The notes below the pieces were generated by a model, which saw only the letters and a list, made by a program, of their open reading frames with translations, made no database searches and was not told the DNA's origin. Position numbers and translations under genes: made by a program. Shown one piece after another: positions 4,523 through 36,892 of a stretch of 64,000 nucleotides of DNA. This stretch comes from Eukaryota sp. TZLM1-RC (Eukaryota; Protista; Metamonada: BaSk clade), in assembly GCA_040285825.1 (NCBI GenBank), contig JAUPSS010000007.1, positions 768,501 through 832,500 of the forward strand. The letters are read 5' to 3'. Position 1 is the first letter of the stretch. The number at the start of each line of letters is the position of its first letter.

Positions 4523-5431
4523 TTATTTATTCACTGCCTTTAAATTACAAGCTAAATGACCATACAACAAATCATAAAAATGCTCATCTTCAATAAACTC
4601 TGGATGAAACATTTCAAATATATCAACAACCTTGCCTACAGAAAAACCTCTATCCCAATGGAGAACTACCTTAAAGGTACAGAGATCTATGCAGAATGAA
4701 CATAAACCCAGAAACATTAGGACAGCACGTAGAGTGATGCTGTGGAATTCAGGAAGAAACAACAGCAACTTGTGGTTGACTGTATTAACATTTATTCCTA
4801 TTAACTTGGATGTTGGAATTATACGAGCCTTTCCTGTTTTATGACCTTTCAAGATGGTGAGGAACTCTGTGAGAAGAGAGCTGGGAATATCGACCATTTC
4901 ATCAATTAGTTTTAATGAATAATGGAGACCATAATTCTTGATAATGTCAGAAAAGCCAAGATTCCACAGGGGATGCATCAACCGACAATGTAAAAAATCC
5001 CATGAGAGCAGTAGCTTAAATGCATCAACGTCCATGCAATCACTACTGTTTCCATAGGTTAGATTGTAGAGGAGACCGTATGAGAGGTAGTCATTTTGGA
5101 GTCGTGAAAATATGTGTGAATCTGCAGATCGCTTTTTTAGACGTTTAGCCACATTGATTGTGCTCTGATAGTTGTATTTCATGGAGTTTACTATACTGGA
5201 AACATTGTTGATCATCAACAGATCACTGTATCGGTGTATATAATCAGAATCGTCATGGAAAGCCACGCTGCAGAATTTAACAAGATCAACCAACATTTGG
5301 GACGCAGGAGCTTTCTTGCAGAGGAGGGAGATGCATTGAAGTCCCCTCTCTGCGGTTTCACTGTATTCACAGTCAAACAGATAGAACCTTGAAAGGTCTA
5401 TCCAATCCTCTATATCCAGTGTATGTGTCAT
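4523..5431 (-). CDS. Orphan 302-aa protein, paralog of 38410-39318
   Basis: Intact ATG-TAA ORF; roughly half identical by eye to 38410-39318 (GLLYNLTYGN, LFLPEFH, LCSFCIDL blocks). Confidence 0.8.
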   Translation of the reverse strand: MTHTLDIEDWIDLSRFYLFDCEYSETAERGLQCISLLCKKAPASQMLVDLVKFCSVAFHDDSDYIHRYSDLLMINNVSSIVNSMKYNYQSTINVAKRLKKRSADSHIFSRLQNDYLSYGLLYNLTYGNSSDCMDVDAFKLLLSWDFLHCRLMHPLWNLGFSDIIKNYGLHYSLKLIDEMVDIPSSLLTEFLTILKGHKTGKARIIPTSKLIGINVNTVNHKLLLFLPEFHSITLRAVLMFLGLCSFCIDLCTFKVVLHWDRGFSVGKVVDIFEMFHPEFIEDEHFYDLLYGHLACNLKAVNK

Positions 5432-7724: not shown

Positions 7725-9853
7725 GAAGAGTTGAGTTTATTGTGGTGATTTTTGCTTCTTCAAGCTCTGTTATTCGGAAGTTAACGATCCTTGACTTTGT
7801 GGTTGCAGGATTTTTTTTCCTTTGTACATTTGTTTTTTGAAGTAAAGTTTACTTTTCTCTTGGCTTGTTTTTTATTTTTTTTATTTCGAGAGCATTTGTT
7901 CTGTTCTGATATATTATGAAGATACTTGTGTCTGTGTATTCTGTTAAATGTAACACTGTCAACTGTACAGTCGAGTTTAAGGGCTACAGTTTTCATTTAT
8001 TAATAATTGGTGTGGAAATTTTTCACCTTGGATATCTGTATTCAGTTGAGGCTAGCATTGCCAAAACTTAGCCCGGTGGTACCTAGTTTGATTATGCTCT
8101 GTATGGAATAAGATATGTTTTTCGTTGTTGTTGCACTTATCGAATGAAGAACTTGGTTAATCATGTGGTATTAATGTTTTGTGTTAAGAAGTCAAATATT
8201 TAGTACAAAGAAAAGCAACAATGCCATCACTCATCCTCCAAATACAGAAAAGACAGCCTCTGAAAGTTAGCAAAATTAATTTTAGTTTGTGTTTTGTACT
8301 GAAAAAAGTTTTGAAAAGTGCCAAATAGAGCCCAGACTCTAGCAGAGAGCCCTCAAAGATCGCTTATGGGCTCAATTTCGATGGGTTCTATCACACAGCC
8401 TCTGAAGAAAAGGACTCTAATTGGCCCAACATTCAACATAGAGCATATGTTAAAAATGAACTAAAACACAGTTTAATTATATGAAACACAGACTAACAAC
8501 CTACCTAACAAACTACAACTACATTTATGCTACAATATCTTCTGTTAACAAAGGAACCTCTATTATTTCGAATTGAGAAACATCAAAGAATAAGATTGTA
8601 GAGAAAAGTAAAAAAAACAGAGTTAGAGTTGATGACAAGAGTACACATTTTGGTTCATGATCGAAGAAAAAAGTACACACAAATAATGTAAATATTGGAC
8701 AGAAATCACTTATAGGCTCTATTTGGGACCAGTTTTTGGTGTCAGTCTTTAAATTGACTAAAACAAAATACTGTTTTGTACAAATGAAATGGTTTTGTTT
8801 TGAAAATAGAACTATTTTATTTGTTTGGACTATTTTTTGGTCTGACTATTGATAAAAGTTTTTTCAACTGTGTTCTTGACTCTCTTTTTTATTACTTACC
8901 ACATGAACTCAAACAATTTTATTTTAATTTAGCTGTGGCTAAACGTGACTTTCCCTTTTAGGAAGGTAGATCACGTCATCATAGCTTTAAATTGTAGTTT
9001 GTATTTATTTATTCTGATTTCTTATATTCCTGTTCATAAACGTCTGTTTTTGTTAGTTTATTATGAACCGTGCACAAATAGCAACATTTGTGCGTTGTTT
9101 GGAAATCTTCGTATTCTCTTTTTTTATAACCATACCTGGGCGTGACTACTATCTCCATTTGTCATGGCAGCATATTTCAGTCATATTTTATATCATGTTT
9201 TTGACAATATAGTATACTAGATATTATCTTGTTATTAGGTCTTTATTCAATAATTCTTAATTGATCAAATGATATTTTTATAGCGGGACAATCTAGCTGA
9301 ACACATGTCTTTCAAACAATCAAATCTTTTTCTTAGTTTGTAATCAGTTTAGCACTATCCAATCCACTGGTATCATACCTTTAAATTGAACCAATGGTAT
9401 ACCTTAAATTGGAATTGGAATTCAAAGGTATGACTGGTATCCTGATGAAAACTACGCTTTCTGATGTGTTTTGTCTTCTCCACTTCGTCAACCACCACAG
9501 TTGCCTCTTTGGGACCCAAAGTTTGGGTTCTTCTGCGTTTGGTGTTGGCACTTATTACATCTCCAACACCTTAGTTTAATAAACAGTTATATTTTCAATC
9601 GTGTCCACCCTACTTAACCATTCTAGTACAAAACAAAAAATTCTTTATTGAGATTTTTAGGGATGTCAAGATTTCAAATTGCAAATTGTCACAGTCTGAT
9701 GACAAAACTACTGATAACCTTGACCCAACATGACAGTATTGTCATGACGTCATGCCCAGTTCACAACAGTGTATTAATACATAAACATGGATTGACAAAA
9801 AAATGTATTTTCGAAAGGTGTACAGAAAACGTAATACTAAAAACATGACCAAT

Positions 9854-18398: not shown

Positions 18399-19237
18399 AT
18401 TTGAAAGAATCTTGAGAAAGATTTTCTGAACCTTCATGAACCTTAGCTTTCTGTAGGTATACTGGTCTATCTTCATCATCTACATGTGCTTTCATCACGG
18501 CACAACATAGTTACGGTTTGTGTTGTTGATCATTTGTTGAAAAAAATGAAAAAAAAACTTTTGTATAATATTGCTCTGTAAAGCAATTACAAGCACAAAA
18601 GTTTTTTTCTGTCTGTAACAGAAAGGCACTAGATGTTAGTATTTAACCAGCCACAATTAACTAAAAATCTTGTAAATTCAAATAAATTTAAAGAATGGTT
18701 AAAACAACTAAATATTTCGGGTGCAGTAGTTTGGGTCTTATACAAGTGTAGCTCAGAAATAAAATGATGACGTCATCAGATCAAAATGCCACATCTCCAC
18801 TAGATCAAAAAGCACGTGCATTGCCCCTGAGATTAGTTGTCATGTCTGCAACTATTTGGGGATACTCGGAAAATTTGATTGTTGGTTTTGAGAGAACATT
18901 TGCTTGTAGCGAAGTCAACTTGGTTAGGTGAATATAGGTTTTTCTATTTGGATGAATTCATTGAGAAATAGGTTACAGCAAGGAAAAAATATTCCTAGAA
19001 TTATGGTCAGTGCTGCAACAGTTGATGAATCTTTATTGCGCAAGAGTACCAGATGTTGAAACGATTGGCCATTCAGCACAATAGATATGCTTGAGAAGTG
19101 TAATAAAAAAGTATATTAATAGTGGAAATAGAATGTTTCTATTGGGGACTCTACATAGTATAACATCAAAGATCAAATACAATGTGTAGTATATATGAAA
19201 CTCCAACACTAAGAAAACAAAGAACAAAGAACAAAGA

Positions 19238-19364
19238 AAACAAGAACCTCATTCTGTGAATTTCATCGGAAATGCATACATCAAGTAGCATTCCTCCATT
19301 CCCTTATACGGTTTCCTTTTCAGGATCACAGCGCCCGAAGGCAATACATGGATACAAACAACTA
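19238..19364 (-). ncRNA. Candidate omegaRNA (scaffold plus 3' guide) of Fanzor copy 1
   Basis: Immediately 3' of the stop codon: GCC-UUCG-GGC hairpin (19333-19342), UCCU-GAAA-AGGA hairpin (19314-19325), long hairpin 19268-19294, closing helix CUGUGA/UCACAG. The 5' and 3' motifs are shared with copy 2. Exact ends are inferred. Confidence 0.7.
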
Positions 19365-21356
19365 TCACTCTCTCACCTCCCTTCTAAATGTCTCTGGTCT
19401 GATCCCAGTAAAATGTTCAGAAATCGCAATCTCTAGCTGATTTCTTGAAGCGGAAATGTCTCTAGACCAGCGTTCATCACATCTAGGACATTCAAAGTAA
19501 GCATTATTGATTCTTCGAGTGTCTTCATGATACACCTTCCTGTGATGTACCTTGCAACAATTGGTTTTGGCAGATGTCATGTATTCATCTCCAACCTTCA
19601 CATTGGCAAAGTATTTCTTTACTTCTGTCAGAAACTTCTTAGTTGGGGCTTTGGTGGATTGTCGAGAAGGTCCATTACCACCATTACCAAACCAAATAAT
19701 AGTTTCCCTGTTATTAGCTAGTCTCTTAATTTTGTTAATGAAATGAATGAACCTTTTTTGTCTTCTTATCACAAAATCAAACTTATTTCGTCTCAAAATT
19801 CTCTCTGTACTATTGGTCAAAGTTTGGGAAACCAAAGAAATTGTTTCCTGCTCATCATTCCTTATCAGTGAAGCTATTTCAATGAGATACCTGTTGAAGC
19901 TCTCAACGGAATAAGTGTTCACAGAGGATTGAGTGAGTGGCTGGGGAAAATCAATTACTTTTGCTTTCGGATTCAGTAGAATTCCAGATTGTTCAACAAT
20001 TACCCTATTCTCTTGTGAACAATGTCCAGTTGTCCAACCACATAAATTTGAATGGTTTGGATCAACCGCCACGAAAAAAAGGTCTTCTCTGATGGGAAGA
20101 TCCTGCGAGCAATCTTGAGACCGTCTCGCAATTTTCCTCGGTCGGTTAGCTCGCCCATTTATTCTCTTATTTCGTTTTCTAGTGGACTCTCTGAAATAAG
20201 GACGACTTTGACCCAATGCTTGAATTTCAGAATTTTTTCGCCTGGTGCACGTCTTTTTGGGTTTCTTTGAAAAAGTGAAGCGCAATGAGAGTCCATTGCT
20301 AGAAATTGAGAAAGTTTTAAATTTTTTCTTGTTAAAAAACTTAAAAGGGTTCCGTAATAATTGTTGGTTAGGATTCAACTTTTTGAAATATTCCAGAGCT
20401 TGTTGATTAAAAGGAACAAACCCTGGAACTTTGGTGGCAATTGGGGATAAGGCATGTCTTCGAAATACATTTGGGCATGTACTTTCTAGACGATGTAAAA
20501 TTGCCAATCCCCAATGGCTTATCAACCAACAATTATAAACAGTGACATCCAATTCATCACGCCTCAGGGCACGCGTATACAAATCATTAGATGTTACTGT
20601 TTGGTTCCAAATTTCGGAAATATGAAAATGATATTCATCATACCATTGTCTTAAATTTGCAGAAATTGTGGAACTGGAAACCACACAACTGGCATACTTT
20701 GATGGAGCAGGACACTCCATCTGCTTACCCATAGACCTGAAGAAATTCAGTTTCCAGGTCACAGGGCCATCGGTCAGCAGCTGTCTGTGAGCTGATTCGA
20801 GTTGAACAGCTCTATTGCTAAAAAGAGCAGCCTGACAAAAGGGTGGATGTTCTTGGCCCTCTACTAACGGAGGCCACGGCCAGGTAGCACTTGATGTCAT
20901 ATGCGTAAGAGCCTCATAGACATCAGGGTTAGTGCTCTTGAAAGGCTCCCTAATTTTAGGTCGACTGTGGGTGACGCAGTCGAAGCACTGCGACCAGAAT
21001 TGACGGTGAGCGAGCCAGCAGGACAGATGCGGATATTCTAATAGAAGCTTTCTTGCCAATAAGGTGGCATAGAAAGCAACATCTCGTAAGTGAATAAGCT
21101 GTGCCTCAATAGCTTGAGCAGCACGAGAGGCAAAGAATCTTGGGAGGCTTACAGGCACAGTCGTGGTTGTGGCAGACGGGAGAGGGTCTGGTGGCGGGCG
21201 AACTGCAAATGGGAGTGGCCTTTCGCCCTCATTTAAGCCAGCACTTGGGTGGTGCGCTGCTTCTGGAATCCAACCATTATCATCTGGTGATGACACTTGT
21301 CTCTGAGGACAAGTACGTCGGTTGTGGGTGGCCGCCCGGCAGACGGAACACGGCAT
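19365..21356 (-). CDS. Fanzor1-type (TnpB-derived) RNA-guided endonuclease, intact
   Basis: RuvC-I VAVDPN (codon 20061-20063), IIWFGNG region without the canonical Glu, rearranged GDEYMTS (19584-19586), NCC...CPRC zinc finger, RuvC-III WSRDISASRN (19458-19460); first ATG at 21356. Confidence 0.88.
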   Translation of the reverse strand: MPCSVCRAATHNRRTCPQRQVSSPDDNGWIPEAAHHPSAGLNEGERPLPFAVRPPPDPLPSATTTTVPVSLPRFFASRAAQAIEAQLIHLRDVAFYATLLARKLLLEYPHLSCWLAHRQFWSQCFDCVTHSRPKIREPFKSTNPDVYEALTHMTSSATWPWPPLVEGQEHPPFCQAALFSNRAVQLESAHRQLLTDGPVTWKLNFFRSMGKQMECPAPSKYASCVVSSSTISANLRQWYDEYHFHISEIWNQTVTSNDLYTRALRRDELDVTVYNCWLISHWGLAILHRLESTCPNVFRRHALSPIATKVPGFVPFNQQALEYFKKLNPNQQLLRNPFKFFNKKKFKTFSISSNGLSLRFTFSKKPKKTCTRRKNSEIQALGQSRPYFRESTRKRNKRINGRANRPRKIARRSQDCSQDLPIREDLFFVAVDPNHSNLCGWTTGHCSQENRVIVEQSGILLNPKAKVIDFPQPLTQSSVNTYSVESFNRYLIEIASLIRNDEQETISLVSQTLTNSTERILRRNKFDFVIRRQKRFIHFINKIKRLANNRETIIWFGNGGNGPSRQSTKAPTKKFLTEVKKYFANVKVGDEYMTSAKTNCCKVHHRKVYHEDTRRINNAYFECPRCDERWSRDISASRNQLEIAISEHFTGIRPETFRREVRE

Positions 21357-21831
21357 AGTGTCAGACAATCAGAAATGATTGATTGTTGAGTTTGGGTTAT
21401 TTTCAAAATTTGCTGTCGATGTCAACAACTTTTCTTCTATTTGCTATATTGAAATAAAGATTGTTTAAACAGTTTATTAAAGGTACATCTATCGAGACAT
21501 CAGGTTTCTGTTGTGTTTCTCTCTTGAAAGCAGCATGTTGTGTCACTGATGTTGGTAATTGGGTTTCGAATGGTTTGCCGTCGGTTTCATCATCCAAAAT
21601 TCATCTTTATCAAACTTTTTCTTTGTTTTTCATCTCAACATTCAAAGGTCCGTACTTCAGCAATATCTTGACCTCTCCAACCTTCCTAATAGGCTTTCAG
21701 TAGTAGCACAAACTACACATCTCCACACCTTTCAATGAGTACCTATAAAGATACTACAGAATATTGGTTTTTTCGTCGACGTTTGAAACTAGAATTGCTT
21801 AAACAACGCTATAGTCCTGAATCTGTAGCAA

Positions 21832-22620
21832 ATGCTTACACCAAGTGTATCAACAAGACACCAGAGGGGCTATCACTCATCAACAAAATCTAAAATCTCC
21901 ACTCCAATCGAAACCCATCCAGTCATTCTTTCCGCACGTCGTCGTTGGGAACGCCATGTCGTCGCAGCCCTGGAAGATCTTCGCCGTGAAAGCAAACTCC
22001 CGCTTGTAGATTCTGTCACATCCTCGTCCGTTGACTTTATGTCCCTTCGTTACGTGTGGGAGCCGGAGGAACTGTTCTCCGTTCTTCAGTCTCTCTTCTC
22101 CTAACCGTAACAATGAACCTTCCCTATCACCATGGGGCCTTATCAAGCTCTCCATGCACGTTCGTAGCTTAACCAATCTAGCTAATGAATTCACAGAGCT
22201 TTCGCCAAACAAGTATGTTCAGATAGGAGTTGACGAATTAACATTTAATAATTCAAATAATAATTCTGTTAATTCACGTATTAAATTAGCTGCTGACGTC
22301 GCAGGGAAGCACTACCCTCCCCAGTGTCGTCATTTTTGCCGGCAAGGTGTTCCTAGCGTTAACTAGGTACAAATGTTAACTACATAACCATTGATCAGTT
22401 TTTTCTACTTTGGGACAGGATTATTGGTTTTGATGATTTAATTTTATTACCTTTACTAGCTGCTGCCAAATTTTTCAATTGTATTGTTTTTAAGGGAATG
22501 GTAAAACTAATTTCTGTTTCACTCCTAAACCAATTTTGAAATTCTTCAGTACAATTTTCACCCAAATTCAAACATATATCATGCTGCTCTTGTATTAGGC
22601 TCTGTCTATATTAGCTTTGT
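21832..22620 (+). pseudogene. TBC1D19-like RabGAP pseudogene (frameshift plus internal deletion)
   Basis: WGLIKL...FTELSP...QIGVDE...FCRQGVPS, then almost directly DQFFLLWDRIIGFDDLILLPLLAAA (C-terminal TBC1D19 motif). Frameshift near 22100. End approximate. Confidence 0.6.
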
Positions 22621-23255
22621 TGCAGTACATTCTGGCAATTTCAAATAAACAATATTGAATCCATAGATGTCTCTATGCCATCAACACACAAGGAAAATGT
22701 TAACTACTTATCACCACTTTATTTTATTTATAAAAAAGATACCTCTGGTGTCCGAATGATTGACACTTCCTTCAGTTGTATTAGTCCGCAATTTTCCGTG
22801 TTTTCTTCAACAGAAAAACCGTCAATAAAACCGTTTGAAAGTGATAAACTGAAGGATACTCTGGAGGAGGAAATATCAGATAATTTATACATCAATGAGG
22901 TTGTGTCCGTCATATAGAGGATTGACTTGTACGATAGAATCGTGCCACATTAGCTTGGGTAGTACTAATGGAGGATAGAGCATCTAGAGCACGCACCTTT
23001 GTATCTTCGGAAGCTGGAACCTTAAGTTGAAGTAAATTGACATCAGAAAAAAAATGATCGGTGTTAAACGGCATGGATTTTGAGAATTGGGAATGGGGTG
23101 GGAATGGGAATGGGAATGGGAATGGCAATTCACCAATTTTGCAAAATACATTCAATATTATATAACAGAATGGGTTGATGACTCACTGTGACGTCATCGA
23201 AATATCCATTTCATTTCATTTCCCTCTTTGTACATTAGCCATATCACTATTTCCC

Positions 23256-24791
23256 ATGGACTTTGCTGCAGTCAAACAGTCTGCCAACGACCTATTCAAA
23301 ACTCGTGACTTCGAAGGTGCTATTCGAACTTACACAGAAGCTCTCTCCAACCATCCACCGACTGAGTTCAAAACTGTATTCCTCTCAAACCGCTCTGCTG
23401 CATACTCCTCCATTCAGAATTATGAAGCAGCCCTCTCTGACGCAAGCACAGTCATTCAACTAACCGACGTAGAACCTTCAATCCTGTCCAAGAACGCCCT
23501 CCGTGTGCTTGAATGTCTTATCCAACTAGCCAGAGTATCCGACGCCAAGTCTTTCATTCATTCCCTTCCTCCAATCCTTCCCAAATTCCAACCCCGTCTG
23601 GACCAGCTGAAACTAACCCTCAGGCAACTTGATGACGTCATGGTTTCCTGCGACTCCCTCTTGAAAGCCAGGAAGGGTGAAGAACTTGGAGAGAAGGTTA
23701 GTGAATTAACTCAAATAGCACCACTCTGCTGGGTTGCTGTCTATTACAAGGTTGAATCTTTTCTATTAAACAAGCAATTCTCAAAGGCAACTGATTACGT
23801 TAATCAATACCTATCACGTCATCCAAATTCCTCTAAATGTTTGTTACTGTTAGCCGAATGCTACTGGTGTCTTGGTAACACAGACAGGACATTGGCAATA
23901 TTGAGAGAAATACTATCACTAGACCCCGATCTGTCGGAGGCCAAGGAGATGAGGAAGAATGTTAAAGTGTTGCTGGAATTGAAAGAAAAAGCGAATGGTT
24001 TGTTCAAGGCAGGCGACCTTGATGCCGCAATCAATCAATACTCCCAGTTTTTAACTCTTTCCGAATCAATATCACCGTTTTCTCAACTTCGAGCTCAAGT
24101 ATACTGTAATCGTAGTGCGGTATTAATGAAGAAAGAGCAATTCGAAGATGCCCTTTCTGATGCTAATAATGCACTGGAAATTGATTCTGATTACACCAAG
24201 GCTTTGTTTAGGAAAGCTCAATGTGAGGTACAAATAGGTGATTTCCAAGCTGCAGTGTTTTCGTTTGAACGGCTGACTACTTTGGAGCCCAACAATAGGA
24301 CATATCAGCAAGAATTACAAACCGCAAAGCAATTAATGATGAGGAATGGAAAGAAGGATTATTATAAACTATTAGGTGTCGATAAGAATGCATCTCCTGC
24401 TGAAATTAAGAAACAATTTAGAAAGGAAAGTCTGAAATATCATCCTGATAGGTGTGCTGATCTGAGTGCAGAAGAAAAAGAAAAAGCTCAAACTAAGTTT
24501 CAAGCAATAAGTGAAGCTTATAGTGTACTCTCTGACCCTGAGCAACGGAGGAAATACGATGCCGGAGAAAGTGATAATCCATTTGGAGGTATGGGAGGTG
24601 TTGATATTGGTGGTATGGGTGGTGGAATTCCAATTGATCTCTCTCAAATCTTCTCCATGATGGGTGGCATGGGAGGAATGGGAGGAATGGGTGGAGGAAG
24701 CCCTTTTGGTAATGTAGGTTTTGCAGGAAGTAGGGGTGGTAGACGAAGTGGAAATCCTTTTGGAAGTAACGTTCGGATTAATTTTGGTTAA
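23256..24791 (+). CDS. DNAJC7: DnaJ homolog subfamily C member 7 (TPR repeats plus J domain)
   Basis: Two TPR clusters ([14 protein letters not shown]), KDYYKLLGV...HPD J domain, G/M-rich tail; start at MDFAA. Confidence 0.92.
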
Positions 24792-25629
24792 TTATTAAGT
24801 TTTTTTTTGTTTCTGTGTTATAAATTTTAGTTTTTGTTTAATCTAAATTTATTATTTTAATAGAAATATTAGTGTACATAGTTAGTTTATGATTTACTTA
24901 TATTAATTCAATAGAACACAAAAAAAAACACAGTTTAAACGCTTGCTGATGTGTCATTATTTAGAATAAAAGCTAGAAATTTCACAGTGTCTTGTTTTGA
25001 AGAATAACCAATAATGATTTATTGATGTAGTTTTTTCAAAGAATCACTCACTACATCTTTTCAACACCTTTGTACATGACTGAAACTAATCATCAAATTA
25101 TTTCGGCTTTACAATCTCTGAACTTTATGATTTCTTATTTCTTTAAATGACACTTTTTATGGCTCTATGCAATTTTTGGTAGCTCAAAATTTGTGATTGT
25201 TATCAATGTTCTACCGACTTAACCGACTTAAGCTGATTGAAAAAACGATGCTAAACGTTAATATACACGTGGGTCTGTTCGTAAAAAACTTGTTGTTGCA
25301 GAGCAATTTGGCCAGTATATGAAATTCGTTTATCCTTTTACCCTCCAAAATATATTTTTTCTGGACTTTGAATAAAAAATGATAAAATTAAGTAAAAAAT
25401 GTTGAGTTATTCCCCACAATTTATGAGTAACATGTTCCATTCTAAATGGCAGCAATCATTCTGAGCAATACTTACAAAAGTATTAAAATGTTGAATGTCA
25501 GAATTGGAACTTCTTTTTTACAGAGATACGGTAGTACAATCGGCAATTAGATCAGTTCCATCCTACCATGCACATTTAATATCACCTCGTTTTTGGCTCA
25601 GACTGAAATTTAATTCATCAAACAGAGGC

Positions 25630-26760
25630 TTCTATTTTGTGTCAATCAGCTTTTTTTTGGTGGATGCAAGAATTTTACTTATTAATTTTCTCGTAGATTT
25701 CCTGAAGATTCTCATTTGTTAGTTCCCAGTTGCAGTCCATCTTTGAATGAGTTATCTTGTGAACTCGATAGATTGTCACCACAAATCTAGACCAAATGTT
25801 TTCCCCAATCAATTCAAGAAATTAATCACTTAACTTTTATTAAATTTACACACCTTACAAAATAAAATCATAACTAATGGAACGAAATTCATTGAACCAA
25901 AATTTCCTTTATAAAATCTTGATCTGCTTGCTGTCTAGCTAAGGCTTCTCTAATTCGATTGAAAAACCGAGGCAATCTATTAATAATGGCAAATTGAATT
26001 CGAGAGCGCCACAAAAGGATATCAAATCTTTTCATTGTTTTTACTTGAATCATTTTTTGGAAATCATTCAAAAAAGTTTTTTGCTTCTACTGATAGTCTT
26101 CTGTTTATCGAAAATGGGGAAGCAATAAAAACAAGTGGTCTATTTCTATCAGCATTAGCTTCGATTCAAGAAATTCCAAACCGATCTCTTTTTGATTTGC
26201 AGTTTTGTTGTAAAAGCTTCAACAAAAATTGTCAAAGATTTTTGAAAGCTTGGATTTTGATGTTAGACTTAACTCGGCCAAGAAAATAATCCCGCTTTTG
26301 CAAATCTTTTCAAGATATGTGTGATAGTACTTCTTCTGCTTAAGTAACAACCATTCCTCAAGTTTATGATACTGTCTTAACTGATTCTGCTTGGACTCTG
26401 AATATGAGACTTCGTTCCTTTATCTGGCCTGTTAATTTACCTCATAATTTAATTTATACATGTTCTCGAAAAATTACAATTACTCATTTGTTAAATTGTA
26501 AACATTTTATTACTTTTAGAAGCAAGGTTCACGATGCTGTCAGAGACCAATTAGATTGTATGTGTAAGTCTCATAAAATTGAATCTTTTTTGAAACCTCT
26601 GTTGTCAAATATGTTTGATGCTGAAGATGATTTTCATAAGAATAATGGAGGTGATGCCATATTACCTGGATCAGATGGAACCTTCATTTTATTGGATGTA
26701 ATGCCTGTTGATCCTTGTAATGTCTCAAATGAAATGCTTGTTAATTCTGAAATTCAAAAT
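25630..26760 (+). mobile_element. CRE-like family-A fragment interrupted by a family-B insertion
   Basis: Colinear with 61790-62565; the family-A sequence resumes after the nested insert. Confidence 0.85.
25824..26163 (-). mobile_element. Family-B CRE-like 3' fragment nested in family A
   Basis: KRFDILLWRSRIQFAIINRLP frame; 12-bp TSD ATTCAAGAAATT (25812-25823, 26164-26175). Confidence 0.85.
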
Positions 26761-26850
26761 CGTCAAAATAAAACAAATTAATTCATTTGATTTACAGTCT
26801 TTAAAACTCTTCAGAGGTTACAACTATTTGACTTTTTGTGCCACTAGCCA

Positions 26851-27337
26851 ATGTCTACACCAGCTAAACGACGTCTCATGTATGATCTTCGACGACTTCA
26901 AAAGGATTGTCCCTCTGGTATTTCTGCTGCTCCTTCTTCAGACAATGTACTTGAATGGACTGCTGTCATCTTTGGTCCTCCACAGACACCTTGGGAGGAT
27001 GGTTGCTTTAAGCTCTCTTTATCATTTACAGAATCGTTTGTTCTTCTTCAATACTCACCTCAGATATCCCAATGAACCACCGAAAGTTCGTTTCATCTCA
27101 ACAATGTTCCATCCCAACATTTATAGCGATAACACCATATGTCTGGATATTCTACAGAGTCAATGGAGTCCGATCTATGATGTTGTTAGCGTTCTTACTT
27201 CTATTCAGTCCCTCCTCAATGATCCTAATCCCGCTTCCCCGGCAAACTCTCTGGCTGCTAGGTTGTTTACCACTAATAAAGCTGAATACACAAGGCGTGT
27301 TCGGGAGGTGGTAGAGAAGTCTTGGAGTAGTGATTGA
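26851..27337 (+). CDS. RAD6: Ubiquitin-conjugating enzyme E2 (Rad6/UBC2), intron 27036-27063
   Basis: [17 protein letters not shown]...TPWEDG...FTES|YPNEPPKV...HPNIY...ICLDILQ...WSPIYDV. Confidence 0.95.
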
Positions 27338-27858
27338 GGTGATTTATTAATAAAATTATCTTGATTATTTGTTTTTAAAGATTAATTTTTTTTCAAGATT
27401 TGTTCAATTTTGCTTGAATATATTCTTATTTCATCTAATTAAAATGATTAAACAAAAATCCAAATAAAACAAGATACAAAAAATCCTACCTAATGCGAAG
27501 TACTGATGTTAAACACGGCTGAAGGTAATTATTTCTGACTCTGCCTTCAATTTTTCTACTCATTTCGTGATAATAACAATAACAAACACTAATCCACACG
27601 ATTGGTATCAATAACACAAATGAAAATCAGCATTCTTCCAGTGAGTATCTCCTCTTCATCACTCAATTTTCTGATTCTTCTTATGATGACGTAGGAACAT
27701 CATCTTGAAAATCATGATTGTCTTCAACGCCACTTAACATATGTGAAAAATCATCTCCAGAATTGACAAAACACTAAGTGACTTTGGATACAAGGTCAAC
27801 ACTGCACAGTAAAAGCAAGTTGTGTGGACAGATGTAGGAAAAATGCAGATGAGCCTGT

Positions 27859-27988
27859 TGATGCTTTAAGTCTCATGTGTAACAGATAGAGAATAGAGAT
27901 GTTTATTGAATTTCACCGGCCCTTATAAAGGCCATCACTAGTGAAGTATAATAACAAATGTACTAGACTAATTGTCCACAGTACAACA
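27859..27988 (-). mobile_element. Solo LTR of the Ty3/gypsy family at 43899-49857
   Basis: Shares GGCCCTTATAAAGGCC, TCACTAGTGAAGT and TACTAGACTAATTGTCCACAGTACAACA with 49730-49857; flanks CTGT/CTAT (imperfect 4-bp TSD). Confidence 0.8.
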
Positions 27989-28201
27989 CTATTGTACTTT
28001 AACGCCCACTGTTTTCAAAAACAAACTCTGAACAGGAGGACAAAGAAAGCAGTCTCAGTCAGACTAACTCTGCACTGGGAGTAATTATTTCCAGCAAAGT
28101 AGCTGAAATTTAACCCAAAGACCTTGTAAGGGTTGGGAAAAAATAAAAAAAAAGGTTAAATTATGTATTTGAAATGCAGATATTTACAAAAAGACTAAAA
28201 C

Positions 28202-28495
28202 TCACTCCTGACAAGGACTACGCACTATATGAGTGCCAAACAGTGACATCCAAAACTGTGGAGTGTCGAAGGCAAATGACGACGTCCTTTTCCTAGGGAG
28301 GAACATTGGAGGACTATCTTCCACATCAGATTCAGAATTCAATGACTCAGATGAAAAGGTGAGGTTTTCATCTGAATCAGACACATAAGTGGTGTTGATG
28401 AAAGAAGGTGGGAAAGAAGGACTATCTATACATGGATGATTGACAAACGACAGCTCCATGCCGTCTACCTGAAGCGTTTCAAAGTCGCAATGCAT
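28202..28495 (-). CDS. Small Ser/Asp-rich hypothetical protein
   Basis: 97 codons from the first ATG, with coding-like composition; starts about 20 nt beyond the predicted omegaRNA-2 scaffold. Confidence 0.4.
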   Translation of the reverse strand: MHCDFETLQVDGMELSFVNHPCIDSPSFPPSFINTTYVSDSDENLTFSSESLNSESDVEDSPPMFLPRKRTSSFAFDTPQFWMSLFGTHIVRSPCQE

Positions 28496-28496
28496 T

Positions 28497-28621
28497 GGTA
28501 CAAAATTGGTGACAGAGAATTTCACACAAAGTGAATATTGAATAAATATCCCGAATAATTGTGTAAACTTCTCAAGGGTTAGTATACACTAAACACCTTG
28601 GAAATACGTTGATTAAAACAG
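28497..28621 (-). ncRNA. Candidate omegaRNA of Fanzor copy 2
   Basis: Same 5' motif and TGAAATTC 3' motif as copy 1 at nearly the same spacing (105 vs 104 nt after TAG); hairpin 28573-28600; 15-bp terminal stem 28515-28529/28559-28573. Confidence 0.65.
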
Positions 28622-30489
28622 CTACTGCAGTCTTCTTAGACGTCTCACACGCCTTGGCCTTCGGAATGGTTCTGGCCTAGTAGCAGTGAAATACTCACTA
28701 ATTGCAATCTCCAGCTGGTTTCTGGAGGCTGAGATGTCTCTAGACCAGTTGGTCTGACATCGAGGGCAATCGAACTTTGCGTTATTTACCCTTCCGTCAT
28801 CATGATAGATCTTTCTATGAAAGACCTTACAGCAATTCACTTTTGCTGAGGTCATAAACTCGTCCCCGACTTTGACGCTTTCAAAGTGTTTTTTGATTTG
28901 TTTGAGAAATTTCTTTCGGGGGGATTTCACAGATTGACGAGATGGACCACCACCGCCATTGCCGAACCAAACTATAGTGTTTCTTCCTTCAGACAAGCGT
29001 TTAATTTTGTTAATAAAACTAGTTAGTCTCTTTTATCTTCGTATGAAGAAATCAAACTTATTTCTTCTCAGCTTTTTTCTTGCAACACGCTGCAAATTTC
29101 CAGACATAATTGAAGCATATTCAGGCTCTTCCTCAGATTCAGGAACATAAGGTAAACTTATTTCAATCAGATACTCTTGGAAGCTCTGAGCGGAATAAGT
29201 GTTAGGAGTTGCTTGAGTGAGAGGAGGGGGGTGATTTAGTCTTCGTTCTTTTGGATTCAGTAGCAGTCCAGAACGTTCAAAAACAGTAGCAGAATTTCGG
29301 AAAGAACCAGCAGTCCAACCACAAAGATTGTTGTGGTTTGGATCAATGGCTACAAAAAACAAATTTTCATCAGGATCTCTGTAATTGGGCTGTTGTTCCA
29401 CTGGTAACCGCGGTCTTCTCTGTGGATTTGCTGTTCTAAGGACATTGGGTTTTCGCTTCCTTTCAGAGTTATGAAAATCATAATTTCCAGAGGCTCGCCT
29501 GGGCTCAAATTCCGCTTTATTTGGCCTATTATAAGTTTTTCTTTCCTTCTGGGTAAACGTAAACCGCAAGGAATCACCATTCGAAAAAATGGTATAGTTA
29601 ATAAATTTCGATTTATTAAAAAACCGATAAGGGTTGTTCAGAAGCTCTTTGTTTGCATTTAGTTTTGTGAAATAAGCTTCTGCTTCTTTAGTCAAGCTGC
29701 AGAAGCATGGAGAGCTAACTGGACAGTGGAGAGAGAGTGCCTTTTCATCACATCAGGGCAGTTATCTTCTAAAAAAGATAAATTGTTCAAGCCAGATTGA
29801 ACGATTGTTGCAGCAGACTCCATATTGATGGGAAACCGTTCGTTTCTTATTGAATTTTCGAACAAATTTTGACCGCCACCAATATAGGCGTTGGCTGTCA
29901 TATTGAGCCAATGGACCAAGATATGCTGGTGTATTTCTTGATACCATTGTAAAATTGACTCATCTGGCTGAATCCCTTGAAGTACACAGTCGGCGTATTT
30001 CTTGGGCCAGGGGCAATTTAGAAACTGAGCACAGCTTTTGAAAAAATTGCGTTTCCAGACGACAGGGCCGTCAGCAAGCAACTGACAAAAAGCTTCTCGC
30101 AGTTGGATGGGTCGACTGCCAAGAAGAGTGGAAAGACACCAAAATCTACCACCGTCGGCTGAGGTGGTTTCATTCAGCGGTCGCCAGGGCCAAAAGTGCT
30201 GAACAAGGTGTTGTAGCGCTTGGTAAACCAAAGGATGGTTTTCAAATGGCCTCCTTTGTTTAGGCTCACTTTGGCAAACAAAGTCGAAACAGAGGCTCCA
30301 GAACTGGCTTTGAGTAAGCCACATAGAGTGTTCTGGGTATTGGAGCACAAAGAGTCGTGCTAGGTGAGTAGCATGAGCTCCAATACTAGCAAGAACTTGG
30401 AACTGGCGTTCCATTGCTTCTTGTGCCTCTGAGTCGAAGAACTGGTTGACAGACGCTCCCACAGTTGTAGTTAGTAGAACGTTATCCAT
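28622..30489 (-). pseudogene. Second Fanzor1-type nuclease, disrupted
   Basis: Three ORFs colinear with copy 1; VAIDPN, GDEFMTS and WSRDISASRN retained; frameshift near 29700-29735 and in-frame TAA at 29033-29035 where copy 1 has Gln. Confidence 0.88.
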
Positions 30490-30951
30490 GGCAGTCAACA
30501 CAGAACGGAAACAGTCAGAAATGATTGAAAATTTGTTTCCTAAAATTGAAAATTTGTTGAAGTCAATCAATCTTATAGTTGTCAATTCAAAGTAAAGTTA
30601 GTTACAAGTGTTTATTAATGAGACATATCGTTCAAGATTACTTTCTGAATATTTTCCTTTCTTCAGACAAGAACTACATGTTACAAAAGTTGGTGAGTGA
30701 AGTTTGGTTGGGTTGTCATCATTCCCCAGATTCGTAATTGAATTTCATTTCATCACTTACAACATTTCATCATTTACTCTACTACGAACCTTCTCCTACG
30801 AATTCTTGCTTGCAGCTACTACCACTCTTTATGTCGGAAATTGAGAATCACTTTTATTTTAAGTAAAGTTTTTTTTCTTCCTTCCTCTATGGAATAGAAC
30901 CATGAATACAAGATTGATTCTGGAATCAAATCAAATATAAAAGTCTCTACT

Positions 30952-31413
30952 ATGCAGGGGCACTTATTTCGTAGAATGATCAACACAGAGCTGTTACTAC
31001 ATTGTCATAGGTCCCTTCCCTCAAGTTCTTTTGTGGCTGCCTGGACTTCATATGAATCAGTCTGGCTGTCTTCCCTCTCTTCTATTCCTGATGTTCCACA
31101 CCTTGTATCAAAGCTACAGAAGAGTCTACTTCCTGCATGTTTTCATCCTCAGTTCCAAAACTTTTCCAAACACTGGTTTTCACTACTCAACACTGATTGT
31201 GACTTATCCCATGCTTCGGCAATAGTAATCCTCCTTTGCTCAATTAAACCATCATTCATCACCCCATCATGGAATCATGATTGGCAACTAATTGTCTCCC
31301 TTTTGTACAAACTAACAACCTCAACCCTGCCCCACCCTTTCCTTCTTTCTCTTTATCAACTTCTCTCTACCCTCGTCACTTGCTTCCGTCCTTTTTCTGA
31401 CCCTAATTGGTGA
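30952..31413 (+). CDS. Hypothetical helical protein, probably truncated
   Basis: 153-aa Leu/Ser-rich ORF with host-like composition; ends within a short local duplication. Confidence 0.4.
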   Translation: MQGHLFRRMINTELLLHCHRSLPSSSFVAAWTSYESVWLSSLSSIPDVPHLVSKLQKSLLPACFHPQFQNFSKHWFSLLNTDCDLSHASAIVILLCSIKPSFITPSWNHDWQLIVSLLYKLTTSTLPHPFLLSLYQLLSTLVTCFRPFSDPNW

Positions 31414-31650
31414 CAAATTGACAAATTGGTGACAAGATGGTACTAATACTGCAGTGTGATTTTCCAGAAATGAAATTACCAGTATTCGACATTTGTTCTG
31501 CATCAGTAATCATAATGACTAAAACAATGAAGATAGACATTGAAGGACTTATTACTGTTAATATTTCCAAATGATTACTATTTATCATATTATTACGCAG
31601 CCTTATTAGATTTATTGGCACAATCGCGCACCTTCTGACTAAGTTTCATG

Positions 31651-32118
31651 CAGTGCTCGGACACCATTACGTGGTTCAACTTTGCCACGTGGTGGTCTTC
31701 TTGATGGTCAAATTCATTACCTTATTCTTTTCTCAATTCTTTGTTCTAATGCCATGACCTGGTAGAAAAAACTGTGTATTCGAATTCATATCCCCTAATA
31801 ATGATAATGATGAAGTTACCTTCATGTTTCGGAGGATATTGAGGAAGAATGATTTTCAATTGACTGTTTTCTTGTTTCAATAGTTAAATTTTGGATTTAG
31901 TATTTGGTGTGTTAATGTTAGCCTTGGAAAGTTTTATATTTAGTGTATATATACTATAGCGCTTATTCATGATGCGCAGTTAGTTAGAATTGTCAGAAAG
32001 TAATAGCATTTCACAGGCTGAAAAACACACCTCTACGTGGTTGAAATTTACCACCATAAAGACCACGCTGTGTCACATGGAGGGTAGTCCCGCCATGGTG
32101 GAAAAATTCCGAACACGG
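31651..32118. mobile_element. Non-autonomous hAT-type MITE
   Basis: Imperfect TIRs CAGTGCTCGGA / TCCGAACACGG, 8-bp TSD GTTTCATG / TTTTCATG, subterminal ACGTGG repeats. Confidence 0.7.
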
Positions 32119-33588
32119 TTTTCATGTCTCTGAAACTTCAAGCTTCTAAGGATCAAAGTTTATATTACGTTAACTTGTTTAGTTACCTTGAAACATCCCT
32201 TGAGCAATTCGGTCTCATATATTGAGTTGCAATACAAAAGCTACCATATTTTTATGTTGAGAACCGATGCACAGACCTTGTGCGAATTCTCTGCTTTCGC
32301 GTAATTCACATTTGTTGTTCGATGCAATCATGAAAACCTCCCAATAAGCAGTTTTGAAGACCCAGAGTGGGAGGTTTACAAGATTATGGCTCATTTTTTA
32401 TGTAATGTATCTTGTATAGTGCATATATGTCTATATCATGGATGATTCATTGTTGGTTTTTTGACTGTATTACACAACGTTCTGAAAACACAATCTTTGA
32501 CCCAAAAGACAACTTGGATACAAAGAATTGGGACCACATTAAATTAGAACCAAACAAACCGGCCACAGACCTGATCTTTTCATTATTATTGACTCTGTCA
32601 CCCCTCCAAATTTCTGCGTTGGAAACAAATTTATTAGAAACAAATGATGTACATAATTTGTTGAAATAAATTGTTCTTTATTGATTCAATTCTTTTCAAA
32701 ATAACCTTGTGTCATCACCATTTTGATCAAGTAGCAATTTGAAAGATTTGAATTCTGAGGACTAAATGAAAAACACCATTACTGCGAAATGCTTGTACTG
32801 ATTCAACTAGAGAATATTTTTGAAACACTTAAGTGTTGTGTAATAATTATTATTTTGTTGTTGAATGTCACTCCGATTGATTGTCACAAATATATTTATG
32901 TTTAATTGTTTTGAATACAATGGTTTTTTTAAATAACACGTATTCAATTTATTGCTCATTAAACAGTATCAATTGCTGCAATTCCAAACCTCAATTGTTA
33001 GTACTTCCAAACTCCAGTCTACAACATCAACATCTCTGCGACTCTTCCCTGTTCTTATCTATTCAGACTAACCGAGGCCTCTAAACTTTCAAAGGACGTC
33101 ATTAACTTTGACAACTTCCAAGGTTTGTTGAGGATTGTCTGTGGAGTAGAAGTTGGTACAGAATTGTAAGAAAACTGTACACTACACTGTACACTCAAAA
33201 AACTTTTACAAAAATATCAAAAATGATTCAAACAGAATTGTTTTTCTGATGAGCCACTAACAGTAAGTTAATTGTAAGGAAAAGGAAGCAGGTAAATGTT
33301 TATTGATCTTTTACAACCACCTGTTCGAATTATCTATATGATAAGAGCACATGTGTTGGCAACATTAGTGGAAACTGTGACAAGAGATATCATTATTCTA
33401 ACAGTAATTGGAAGATAGAAATTAATTGACTCATTGTTGTAAACTTTTCATTAGAAGAAGAGAACAATCAAGGCTCATACGAAAGACCTAATCTCCATCA
33501 TTCATAAATAATTATATAAAATCGAAAACACGTTTATTTGTATTTTTTTAAAAAAGATTACTATTGTGTACAGAAACTACAACATGAT

Positions 33589-34378
33589 TTACATCATACC
33601 ATACGAGATACCGGCTTGTTGCTTAGGTGAAGCTTGTTCTTCAACTTTTTCAGCAACAGTGGCTTCAGCAGTAGAAGGAGCTTCAGGCTCCATTGGTTGA
33701 CCACCCTCCGTTGGCACTTGTTCCTTCTCCTCCGGTTGTCCTTCTTGTTTTTGTTCTTCAGATGGTTGTTCTGAAGGTTTAGACTCAGTTTTAGGCTCAG
33801 TCGTGGTTGTAGATTCTGCAGCAGATTCGGTCTTTGTTTCAGCAGTAGTGACCTCTTCGGAAGTTTCCATGGGTTCACCTTTCTTCTCTTCCTGTATGGA
33901 TTGTTCTTCCGTAAAAATGTCCTGGACTGGCTCAGCCTGGAGAATTTGTTGTTCAGGTACAACAAAGGAGAATGGAATATCTTCTACACTCTGGTCGTCC
34001 TCGAACAGAATACGAAGAACAGGCTTTCCATCAGGCCTAATTTCCTTGACTTCACCTCTGTAGGCTGATATTAGTTGAAGTGATAAAGTAAATACCTTGC
34101 GTTGACCATTCACCGAGATCTTCGAGGTAGACCAGTGCAAGAACGGTTTGTCCCGGCGAATATTCATGGGCTGGAACGTCCTGCTCAGGGGTCCATGGAT
34201 ATACATCCTTGCGTGGAACCTTGAAAATACGACGCCTTTGATCTGGTTCAGGTTGAGGATCACGGACCTTGACGGAGTCACCAACTTGGTCATCGACGAC
34301 CTGAGCCAAAATGTAGGACCAGTTTCTGGGAAACAATTCAACTTTAGCTAAACACGATTGTCCTTTTTTGAAGAGCAT
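33589..34378 (-). CDS. SGF29-like tandem tudor protein with acidic tail, intron 34065-34095
   Basis: YILAQVV...VRDP...GQTVLAL...STQ|AYRGEV...ILFEDD matches the SGF29 tudor pattern; a 31-nt GT-AG intron joins the two ORFs. Confidence 0.7.
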
Positions 34379-35318
34379 TTATGAATGTAGAAAGTATGTA
34401 AGGAAGGGTTGAGAGATGTTTAAGAGATGCTGCCTCAAGATATCCGAAAAAAGTGGAGTATTTCAGAATCAATCCTGATGCACATATTTTCAGTATTACA
34501 CAAACGTTTTTGAACGCGGCTGTGACTGCGTACGTCTGTTTCCCAACTGACATTGAGTGTCCTACTAGTACTTGTAAAACAGTCAATAGAACCCAACTTT
34601 GTAACAAAATTTGTTTTTGATTGTGAAACTTTTTATCAACAAATACTACCTTAATAATTACAACACAAAACTCGAAGTTATAACCAAGATCCGTATTTAG
34701 TGAAGTTTATTTAAACATTTTAAAATAAGAAGTGAATTGTTTTATAATTTAAGTGTGTGGAGCGTCTTTTTCCAAACATACGTTGAAAAATTAGCGTTTG
34801 GTTCAACAGTAATCTAAATTGATGTTAAGCAGACCTTTAGGAACTTTACTTCAAACATCAAGATCAAAAAAACTTATCCTGTGAATAAACAGGTTTATAT
34901 TATTTAATAAGTTTATCTTGAAATAATGTCACAAATAAACACTGAATGACCCAATATATAGGTTAACTCATTACTTAACATTAGCAGTGTTGATTTAAGG
35001 ACTTCTACCAATGGAACTTTATCTATAAACAATTTTGTAGTACAGAATGCAATACTTCGTTAACGAAGAAGAATTGTAATAAACTATCGCAGATATTCAT
35101 TCAAAAACTAAATTAATTAATGCCAGTGTTTGCGCTTCATAAACGCTGTTCTATTAAAAGTTCAACATTGTGATGTTGATATTGTGCATAATCATGGTGT
35201 GTAAATTATTTGAATGTCAACGTCATTTACATACCATGCTCCGGCTGGACACAAATAGTCTAATCTGTTCTGTTGTTGTTCTACAAATTATTTCCCCATA
35301 ATTCCTACTAGATACACT

Positions 35319-35910
35319 TAATTGTATTTATTGAATTTGCACACTTAATTAAATTAACTCAATGCTAATGGGACGACTATCATTGAACCATGATTTCCTC
35401 TACACAATCTTGATCTGCTTGCTGTCTAGCTAAAGCTTCTCTTATTCGATTGAAAAACCGAGGTAATCTATTAATAATGGCAAATTGAATCCGTGAACGC
35501 CATAAAAATATATCAAATCTTTTCATTGTTTTTTCTTGCACCATTTTTTGGAAGTCATTCAAAAAAGTTTCTGCTTCAACTGATAATCTTCCATTTAACG
35601 AAAATGGGAAAGCAATAAAAACCAGTTGTGTATTTCTATCGACATTAGCCTCTTCAATATCTTTATCATATTTTCTATGTTTCTTTTTTGCTTTAAAATC
35701 CAGAGCAGCCACAGGATTAAGTTTTCTTCTGTGAACCAAAGTATCATTTGCAACATTACATGAGACAAAGTCAACAATAGCTTCAGAATTATCAATCCAA
35801 TCACAGTATACATCACCTCTATCATCAGAACCAAAATTATTCAGAGAAAGTGTTCCTTCAGCAGGGGCTCTTTGATACACGATATCCTTGCAGTTTGTGC
35901 CATATTGAAA
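35319..35910 (-). mobile_element. 5'-truncated CRE-like element, family B, with intact RLE frame
   Basis: DRGDVYCDW...VDFVSC...KAKKKHRKY...FPFSLNGRL; TSD ACTAGATACACT (35307-35318, 35911-35922). Confidence 0.88.
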
Positions 35911-36892
35911 ACTAGATACACTCAATGCATTGGTGGATTTAATAAAATGTAATTGTGAAATATTAAGTTAATGACAATAAGTCGGTCCTATCATTTGTAC
36001 TGACTGCCTTTGAAGTTGTATAACATTTGTTAATAACCATCAGTGTTTTTCAGCTTGTGTACATTCTCACGTTTCAATTTACTTACTCATTTGTCAAATT
36101 TTTGAAAACCACCAAACCTCTGCTGATGCTGAAAAACTCCATCAATGAATGTTTGAGTATTTCACTAAGCGTTAAAAAGCCGCACTGTTGGGTCATTAAA
36201 GGCATGCATCGGAAACATAACCTAGAAAACGGACAAACGGGTAATTTATGACAGTATTGGAAACAATCGAGAAATTGTTCAAGAATCCAATTATAGAAAT
36301 GATGACGTGGCATTACGTGATAACTGTAAAATACTAAAATAACTAAACTACTGTGGCTAGGAGCCAACGTAAGTGTACATTATAGTGATTGTTGACTTTT
36401 TGGTAATATAATCTTCAATAAATTCCTATGTTCAATGTTCTCTGTTTCTGAATTTGAATAAAAAATGTTGGTAAATTATCCAAATTTTTCAAAGCCCTTT
36501 TCCAAAAAATGTTATAACTTTTACAATAACTGGTAATGTTCCCAACACTTGCCTCTTGTATGACAGATTTGACCATTTTTAGTGTTACAGTTAACCTCTC
36601 CACTATTTTAATCACTTGGGATTCAGTGGTAGGAAAATGAAATTTGGTAGATGTATACCATCTGGCAGTGGTAAAAGAACTAATAAAAATGAAGCTTTCT
36701 GTCCGATCTCCTATATATCCTACTGATTTCTTGTAATTATTTATGGTTCAAACCAACTTCTAATTCAAAAAAAGTACAATTAATAAAAGGAAACTGTATT
36801 ATTACTAAAATAAGACTAAAATAACTAATAGCAAAGAACCACTAATTTCCAGTGTTCGGGGGTGCGGGTTGCGTGAACACCGGCGAACACCA

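Follow-up and report, generated by a model that had tools for sequence, protein, structure and literature searches.

How does a nuclease gene become dispersed through a eukaryotic genome in near-identical copies when the element around it carries no transposase, and does the nuclease take part? This question is raised by an intact 663-aa Fanzor1 gene (copy 1) and a broken relative (copy 2) in a 64,000-nt stretch of contig JAUPSS010000007.1, referred to as the window, from the free-living protist Skoliomonas litria (TZLM1-RC). We found that copy 1 belongs, as one of its intact members, to a mobile element family that is young, present in many copies, and free of a transposase. Its copies end on the right at one exact base and lie mostly in host promoters, and half of those analyzed carry short duplications behind a motif that changes with the Fanzor family. 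The reading that we favor, with a probability of about 0.45, is that a separate factor inserts the element and that the Fanzor then cuts the vacant site, where one-sided homing repair would leave the scars. As a bare new Fanzor1 the gene would be ordinary, many being already known; what appears to be new, judged from sequence comparison, is a Fanzor1 element whose target motifs differ by family, whose scars resemble those of a cut, and which docks at promoters. Our literature search found no publication linking Fanzor with Skoliomonas and none that attributes scars of this sort to cutting by a Fanzor. What Fanzors do biologically has been stated to be unknown (PMC10432273).

Fold and Catalytic Residues of the Copy 1 Protein

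An AlphaFold model of the copy 1 protein (mean pLDDT 72) was compared with known structures by Foldseek and VIA. The top seven Foldseek matches were all Fanzor1 (Fz1) proteins, with E values from 5e-13 (SpuFz) to 1e-8, versus 4e-3 for TnpB and 8e-3 for Fanzor2 (9b0l); the three solved Fz1 proteins ranked first, in the structural comparison that the initial annotation had proposed. VIA gave a Z score of 20.6 against SpuFz over 496 residues, 12.8 for the best non-Fanzor structure, and 10.2 for TnpB (8h1j). These scores place the fold nearer to Fz1 than to Fanzor2 (Fz2) or TnpB and within the enlarged, bilobed type. The protein does not belong with Fz2 or the IS607-like group: with Foldseek, VIA, and Pfam, it was not closer to IS607 TnpB and no linked serine recombinase was found.

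All six motifs that had been described in the 663-aa open reading frame (ORF) are present, beginning at residues 429 (VAVDPN), 553 (IIWFGNG), 589 (GDEYMTS), 599 (NCC), 623 (CPRC), and 630 (WSRDISASRN). The catalytic triad D432/E591/D633 is intact in copy 1, and D-E-D is kept across the family. The Fz1 pattern D-X(125-275)-[TS][TS]-XX-zinc finger-X(5-50)-RD is represented by D432, T594-S595, Cys 600/601/623/626, and R632-D633, with a finger spacing that is a variant of the usual one; E591 lies nine residues ahead of C600, since another residue stands in place of the usual first Cys. At RuvC-I, DP is retained and G is changed to N throughout the clade. DPG at this position is near-exclusive to Fanzors (Yoon 2023), but it is not a strict Fz1 criterion, since the reference SpuFz1 has D383 and N385, both Mg ligands in its active site. 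The genomic setting is also that of a Fanzor, namely a eukaryotic host and a gene within a mobile element whose dispersed copies are 98–99% identical and have a common right end. The structural matches, the shifted Glu, and the covarying 3' RNA stem described below all fit the initial call, and on the modeled fold the copy 1 protein is almost certainly a Fanzor1.

SpuFz1, GtFz1, and PpFz1 (Saito 2023, PMC10432273; Xu 2024, PMC11423790) are like copy 1 in their whole-length fold (Z 17–21, ~490 aligned residues), in D-E-D with a shifted Glu, in a C-terminal zinc finger, and in a structured RNA, here predicted, between stop codon and element end; SpuFz1 also has D-x-N at RuvC-I. In contrast, these references are only 10–14% identical to the copy 1 protein, which has a C-C...CxxC finger and, in family A, an N-terminal CCHC-like extension. 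Similar N-terminal Cys/His motifs occur in the distant Fz1 matches P0093, P0101, and P0107. Sequence searches were weak: Pfam yielded only a sub-threshold TNB match, and phmmer and hmmsearch against PDB gave nothing significant. In a tree built without named reference Fanzors, the Skoliomonas relatives formed a supported clade (98/98) separate from metagenomic Fz1-like proteins, and no relatives were detected in JGI metagenome contigs. The close relatives that we traced come from three Skoliomonas isolates only and form one clade, in agreement with the earlier description of the family as lineage-specific. The divergence between families A and B (dN 0.48; dS 3.1, saturated) indicates that the Fanzor protein is maintained under purifying selection between them.

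A Dispersed Element with One Fixed End

Clustering at 90% gave 17 members for copy 1 (family A) and 18 for copy 2 (family B), and 8, 10, and 14 members for other Skoliomonas families. Besides the window, we compared eight family-A loci, two family-B loci, and two loci from isolate GEM-RC1. One locus (L008, GCA_040285825.1) is identical to window positions 22622–36489 and contains copy 2. The family-A copies differ by 0.2–1.6%, and two of the nine sampled (copy 1 and L002) are intact; an intact family-B member (P0029) has 49% protein identity to copy 1. Copy 2 is indeed a colinear, broken paralog, as first noted, with the lesions listed in Table 1. The term "sister copy" that had been applied to it is misleading, as copies 1 and 2 belong to two separate dispersed families and copy 2 has its own 10-bp duplication; a local tandem duplication from copy 1 to copy 2 was rejected for the same reasons.

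The right end falls at the identical base, window position 19254 (...GATGAAATTCACAG, ...TTCACAG), in all nine family-A copies, and the flanks beyond it are unrelated. In L005 this end is interrupted by a later insertion. Family B ends in ...GAAATTCTCAG, and three more families have similar ends. On the 5' side, the limits of the common sequence in family A are variable (21647, 21659, 22368, 22677, and 22911/23131), and copies span a divergent ORF and reach up to 1.8–2.4 kb upstream of the ATG. The span of 19238–21800 proposed at first is too narrow on the left, as sequence common to other copies extends from 19254 to at least 23131. Upstream of the family-A and family-B copies, we found no inverted repeat of the right end, and the 5'-arm and cargo ORFs, for which the equivalent ORFs of other copies were scanned, matched no transposase family in Pfam. 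These results uphold the reported absence of a transposase and of terminal inverted repeats (TIRs). A TIR transposon (Mariner, hAT, MuDR, Sola, or EnSpm) was rejected on the lack of an inverted right end and on duplications that are 7–13 bp or absent, not of fixed length. Spu-1 differs in having 30-nt inverted repeats.

At its far 5' side, copy 1 has a stretch of 25 nt whose only other occurrence is at the far 5' side of L004 (24/25). It may be the true left end of copy 1; alternatively, it could be a coding fragment in common with L004. The AATG at this candidate junction equals the first 4 nt of the 3' flank.

The copies are mosaic, with 52 of 153 informative site pairs failing the four-gamete test. 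The 5' arm of L010 (6273–6606) starts with foreign sequence, including an antisense 3' end of a long interspersed nuclear element (LINE), then continues with an L001-type arm, and skips ~900 nt; this structure is evidence for template switching. Single-base frameshifts common to L001 and L004, and to L009 and L010, were not used as a sign that broken copies move in trans because they lie within homopolymers of a Nanopore assembly.

Several observations concern neighboring Fanzor elements. In L004 (12993–13242), a family-C element with a DLG motif and a ~290-nt 3' RNA region ends within the tail of a family-D Fanzor gene, and in L005 (5237–5255) a family-A copy is inserted 7 nt past a family-C right end. 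Within the last 15 nt of a family-A scaffold, L005 also contains (8086–8680) an element of ~600 bp whose inverted ends are of the TGTTAGAATT type, and a related piece occurs at L004 2269–2470. Remnants of other Fz1-like types with a GDW motif before the shifted Glu (L010 12600–13484, minus strand; L013 21254–21616, plus strand) are nearer to metagenomic matches than to families A and B; the genome has several Fanzor lineages. Contigs from run X3 of the same study, whose organism is labeled differently, are 90–99% alike over parts of the family-A element (window 19200–23100); family A may therefore occur in another isolate.

Predicted ωRNA Scaffold and Guide

The 114-nt region from the stop codon to the right end is nearly invariant within family A. 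Its final six bases form a terminal stem with a hexamer lying upstream, and this stem shows compensatory changes across four families: CUGUGA:UCACAG in A, CUGAGA:UCUCAG in B, and CUGUGG:CCACAG in D (L004), with a pairing probability of 0.85–1.0, and a weaker stem of five pairs in GEM-RC1 (about 0.5). The family-B and family-D scaffolds are more stable than shuffled sequences (z of -4.1 and -3.5). Rfam contained no match. A search of sequencing runs found the locus in none made from RNA and only in DNA contigs of low depth. Based on conservation and covariation, the 3' region is very likely an ωRNA scaffold. By analogy with characterized Fanzors (Saito 2023, PMC10432273), the guide would start at 19253 and consist of the next ~15–20 host bases beyond the right end.

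Insertion Scars and the Predicted Target Motif

Insertion scars were analyzed in 12 TZLM1 copies (families A and B, window copies included). Six of them have, at or close to the 5' junction, a repeat of the bases with which the 3' flank opens, and the duplications start exactly at the right end. The lengths are 7, 9, 9, and 11 bp in L001, L006, L009, and L005 of family A and 13 and 10 bp in L007 and copy 2 of family B, each with p of at most 0.0075 against random windows. All six are directly preceded by TTG (chance ~2e-8), and the fourth base tracks the family: ATTG in four of four family-A copies (TATTG three times, GATTG once) and CTTG in both family-B copies. Weak duplications of 4–5 bp follow TATTG in L010 and copy 1 (23157–23149) and are not significant alone. 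One GEM-RC1 copy has an unreplicated 8-bp duplication after AGTC. The expectation that further copies would show duplications failed for L012 and L013.

The 5' junctions bear further marks, with filler and re-duplication in copy 2 (L008) and repetitive filler in L004. Scars of this kind are associated with polymerase-theta end joining.

From the position of the motif, we predict a target-adjacent motif (TAM) of ATTG for family A, usually TATTG, and of CTTG for family B, and consider this assignment probable. The Fz1 references differ, with CATA and TTAAN. The longest duplication is 13 bp, and all are shorter than the 14–17 nt at which SpuFz1 and GtFz1 cut the non-target strand (Saito 2023, PMC10432273). 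That the scars were made by the Fanzor's own cut seems to us an even bet from the junction geometry.

Seed sharing among the nine family-A flanks was not above that of random ATTG sites (p 0.17–0.6), as expected if each guide targets its own locus only. Spread to new loci through an inherited parental guide seed was rejected on this result.

Placement in Host Promoters

Ten of the 11 annotated TZLM1 insertions lie no farther than 60 nt upstream from the start codon of a host gene, which in eight cases faces the same way, against a background of 5.5% of intergenic bases. For L005, whose annotated start overlaps the element, the first ATG after the element end was taken. In the same orientation, the distance to the host ATG is 39–53 nt in family A and 0–17 nt in family B; copy 2 ends 17 nt before a host ORF with its ATG at 28495. 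In families A, B, C, and D the right end reads YCAG, which resembles the 3' splice site used by the spliceosome; most of these ends are closely followed by the start codon of a host gene that has the same orientation. ATTG was rejected as a positioned promoter element, as it showed no positional peak in 36 upstream regions, a small sample.

An ATG one base past the right end of copy 1 opens a hydrophobic, signal-peptide-like frame of 28 codons (window 19252–19166, minus strand). This frame is possibly the first exon, or a remnant, of the host gene ahead of which the element landed.

A Proposed Model of Insertion and Homing

We propose that the element moves in three steps. First, a separate trans factor, most plausibly a single-strand, HUH-type mobilizer, would insert it directly after the motif and mostly in promoters; the model needs such a factor because homing alone does not give the first insertion. 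Second, the Fanzor, with a guide from the flank of its own locus, would cut the empty allele or excision site ~14–20 nt past the TAM. Third, the far end would invade a filled copy through the 3' flank and copy the element leftward from the right end. Copying may switch template and would halt variably, and its product would be joined by microhomology or filler to the TAM-side end, which would retain the TAM along with some of the protospacer, no farther than the non-target-strand cut. The outcome would be the TAM, 7–13 nt of protospacer, a 5'-truncated element, and the exact right end, a footprint that the six copies with duplications do display. One-sided repair of this type would explain why the 3' end is exact, the DNA arms are long, the copies are mosaic, and seeds are not inherited.

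Homing by TnpB of IS200/IS605 (Meers et al., PMC10055086; PMC10432273) resembles this model, in that the element goes in after a motif identical to the TAM and vacant sites are then cut under RNA guidance and copied back. IS605, however, encodes TnpA and restores the element by clean two-sided recombination without duplications, whereas the Skoliomonas element encodes no mobilizer and its repair looks one-sided and error-prone.

Several points weigh against the model. No mobilizer was found, and no empty allele was observed. Half of the 12 TZLM1 copies, copy 1 among them, lack a significant duplication, and the family specificity of the motif rests on four versus two copies (Fisher p 0.067, or 0.036 with the two weak 4–5-bp cases). 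The family-A scaffold is no more stable than shuffled sequences (z about -1). Cleavage by the copy 1 Fanzor, like the expression and the ends of the ωRNA, is a prediction from sequence, and CrFNuc, the closest architectural precedent, formed a ribonucleoprotein (RNP) that did not cut in vitro.

If the model is true, the junctions would be genomic evidence that a eukaryotic OMEGA nuclease cuts and homes in the genome that encodes it, and the model would explain a footprint whose cause has been open since 2013. The junctions of several young families residing together have a geometry that suits a Fanzor cut, and the motif changes with the protein family, which makes an in vivo role of Fanzor testable (TAM ATTG versus CTTG). 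Intact copy 1 is a candidate compact nuclease with a predicted scaffold, guide boundary, and TAM.

Alternative Routes of Mobility

The alternative that survives best, although we hold it to be unlikely, is a Helitron2-like or other HUH rolling-circle process. One-ended transposition from the right end would make all of the features, variable duplications included, with the Fanzor as a passenger; its TAM may match the target motif, but the scars would not be Fanzor-made. CRe-1,2,3 of Chlamydomonas reinhardtii (Bao and Jurka 2013, PMC3627910) have the same intact 3' ends, frequent 5' truncation, captured 5' sequence, and variable duplications (7–19 bp) directly after a fixed 4-mer, TTTT. Bao and Jurka interpreted this footprint in the HUH sense and left its cause open for both CRe-1,2,3 and MCi-2 (PMC3627910). 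The variable, captured 5' arms in Skoliomonas agree with such a process, as does what may be a palindrome at copy 1's candidate left junction, where a 7-nt match to the reversed right end is the other Helitron2 feature seen. However, HUH insertion normally proceeds without duplication, and in Chlamydomonas duplications accompany ~1/200 Fanzor-less Helitron2 elements versus 10–70% of Fanzor-bearing elements (PMC3627910). The CRe ends match verified Helitron2 elements (PMC3627910), whereas we found no such partner among the fetched loci and identified no Rep-Hel gene or Helitron end. Unlike in CRe, the 4-mer here varies between co-resident Fanzor families, the genes are intronless, and the insertions lie at promoters. 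MCi-2 of Mucor circinelloides is likewise unclassified, with variable 5' arms, a near-identical 3' part, no TIR, and 11–12-bp duplications that have a common pattern (PMC3627910). It differs in that its motif is counted inside the duplication and in the partial Crypton recombinase of MCi-2A (PMC3627910).

We give less credence to the possibility that a non-LTR (long terminal repeat) element retrotransposes the Fanzor element in trans by target-primed reverse transcription (TPRT), the motif reflecting the target preference of its endonuclease. TPRT classically leaves copies that are fixed at the 3' end and variably truncated at the 5' end, with duplications of variable length, microhomology, and filler, a footprint like that seen here, and non-LTR elements encoding a reverse transcriptase (RT) are abundant in the window. 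The local LINEs, however, terminate in AATAAA and A-rich tails, whereas the Fanzor elements have no poly(A) tail and no 3' end in common with them. The extent of the copies across the divergent ORF and the variation of the motif with the Fanzor family also argue against TPRT.

Ranking below this, and in our view doubtful, is a Fanzor RNP that is itself the mobilizer: it would bind the TAM in open promoter DNA and cut where the guide matches poorly or not at all, and repair by the host, perhaps with the ωRNA as a bridge, would copy the element from its exact right end, so that no transposase is necessary. The absence of a transposase from every copy, a motif that tracks the Fanzor family, a junction exactly at the scaffold/guide boundary, and a promoter bias that fits an enzyme requiring open DNA are all consistent with it. 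Against it, the nine flanks lack parent–daughter seed similarity, characterized Fz1 requires both TAM and guide (PMC10432273), and known target-strand cuts lie far from the TAM, not at position 0. If true, Fanzor would be the enzyme that mobilizes a eukaryotic element of a new, self-propagating class, and the unclassified CRe and MCi-2 footprints would be explained too.

It is quite improbable that the protein, guided by RNA, cuts weakly or not at all and acts as a binder that regulates the promoters adjoining the elements. In favor of this reading, 8 of 11 copies have predicted guides that are host promoter or 5'-untranslated sequence, the DPN motif and the variant zinc finger deviate from usual Fanzor motifs, and CrFNuc did not cut. 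Against it, D-E-D is intact family-wide, D-x-N is found in SpuFz1 as well, the TAM and guide target are set apart at filled sites, and the elements are young dispersed repeats and not a fixed host gene.

Features of the Window

Table 1. Coordinates of Fanzor-related features in the window.
Feature	Position	Strand	Basis or remark
Fanzor1 ORF, family A, 663 aa, intact (copy 1)	19365..21356	-	translation, structure, copy comparison
N-terminal CCHC knuckle-like motif (C3, C6, H11, C16) and Pro-rich low-confidence linker	21309..21350	-	not in family B
RuvC-I Asp432 in DPN motif (not the usual DPG)	20061..20063	-	DPN kept family-wide
RuvC-II Glu591, shifted (Ealt) position just before the zinc finger	19584..19586	-	GDEYMTS
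TNB zinc finger, variant C600-C601...C623-x2-C626	19479..19559	-	Pfam, clade alignment
RuvC-III Asp633 (SRD)	19458..19460	-	motif
Predicted ωRNA scaffold, 114 nt from stop codon to right end; stem 19331-19326 with 19259-19254	19254..19367	-	conservation, covariation
Predicted copy 1 guide, unique host flank directly past the element end	19234..19253	-	flank divergence; role by analogy, Saito 2023
Leader of ~125 nt that families A and B have in common (69% identity), probably the promoter of the element	21365..21488	-	sequence comparison
5' arm, variable extent in family A; broken divergent ORF (plus strand, ~21736-22366) without significant Pfam match	21489..23131	.	copy comparison
Candidate left junction of copy 1: TATTG (putative TAM, 23157-23153), AATG, then TTTTGCAAAA palindrome	23133..23157	-	tentative
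Fanzor1 ORF, family B, broken (copy 2)	28622..30489	-	net 1-nt frameshift near 29714-29738, in-frame TAA 29035-29033
Family-B ωRNA scaffold and right end (28513), degraded: small deletion, CTCAG -> CTCTG end	28513..28624	-	comparison
Copy 2 10-bp duplication, 3' copy, start of predicted guide	28503..28512	-	junction comparison
Copy 2 left junction: CTTG (31436-31433), 10-bp duplication (31432-31423), 9-nt filler, second 9-nt repeat (31413-31405)	31405..31436	-	

Elsewhere in the window, two paralogous 302-aa ORFs (4523–5431 and 38410–39318, minus strand) have 77% DNA identity over 300 nt and no significant Pfam match. A Gypsy-like gag/protease/integrase region occupies 43899–49061 on the minus strand, and a near-complete non-LTR element with RT lies at 60429–62951 on the plus strand. 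Truncated LINE copies with A-rich tails are numerous throughout.

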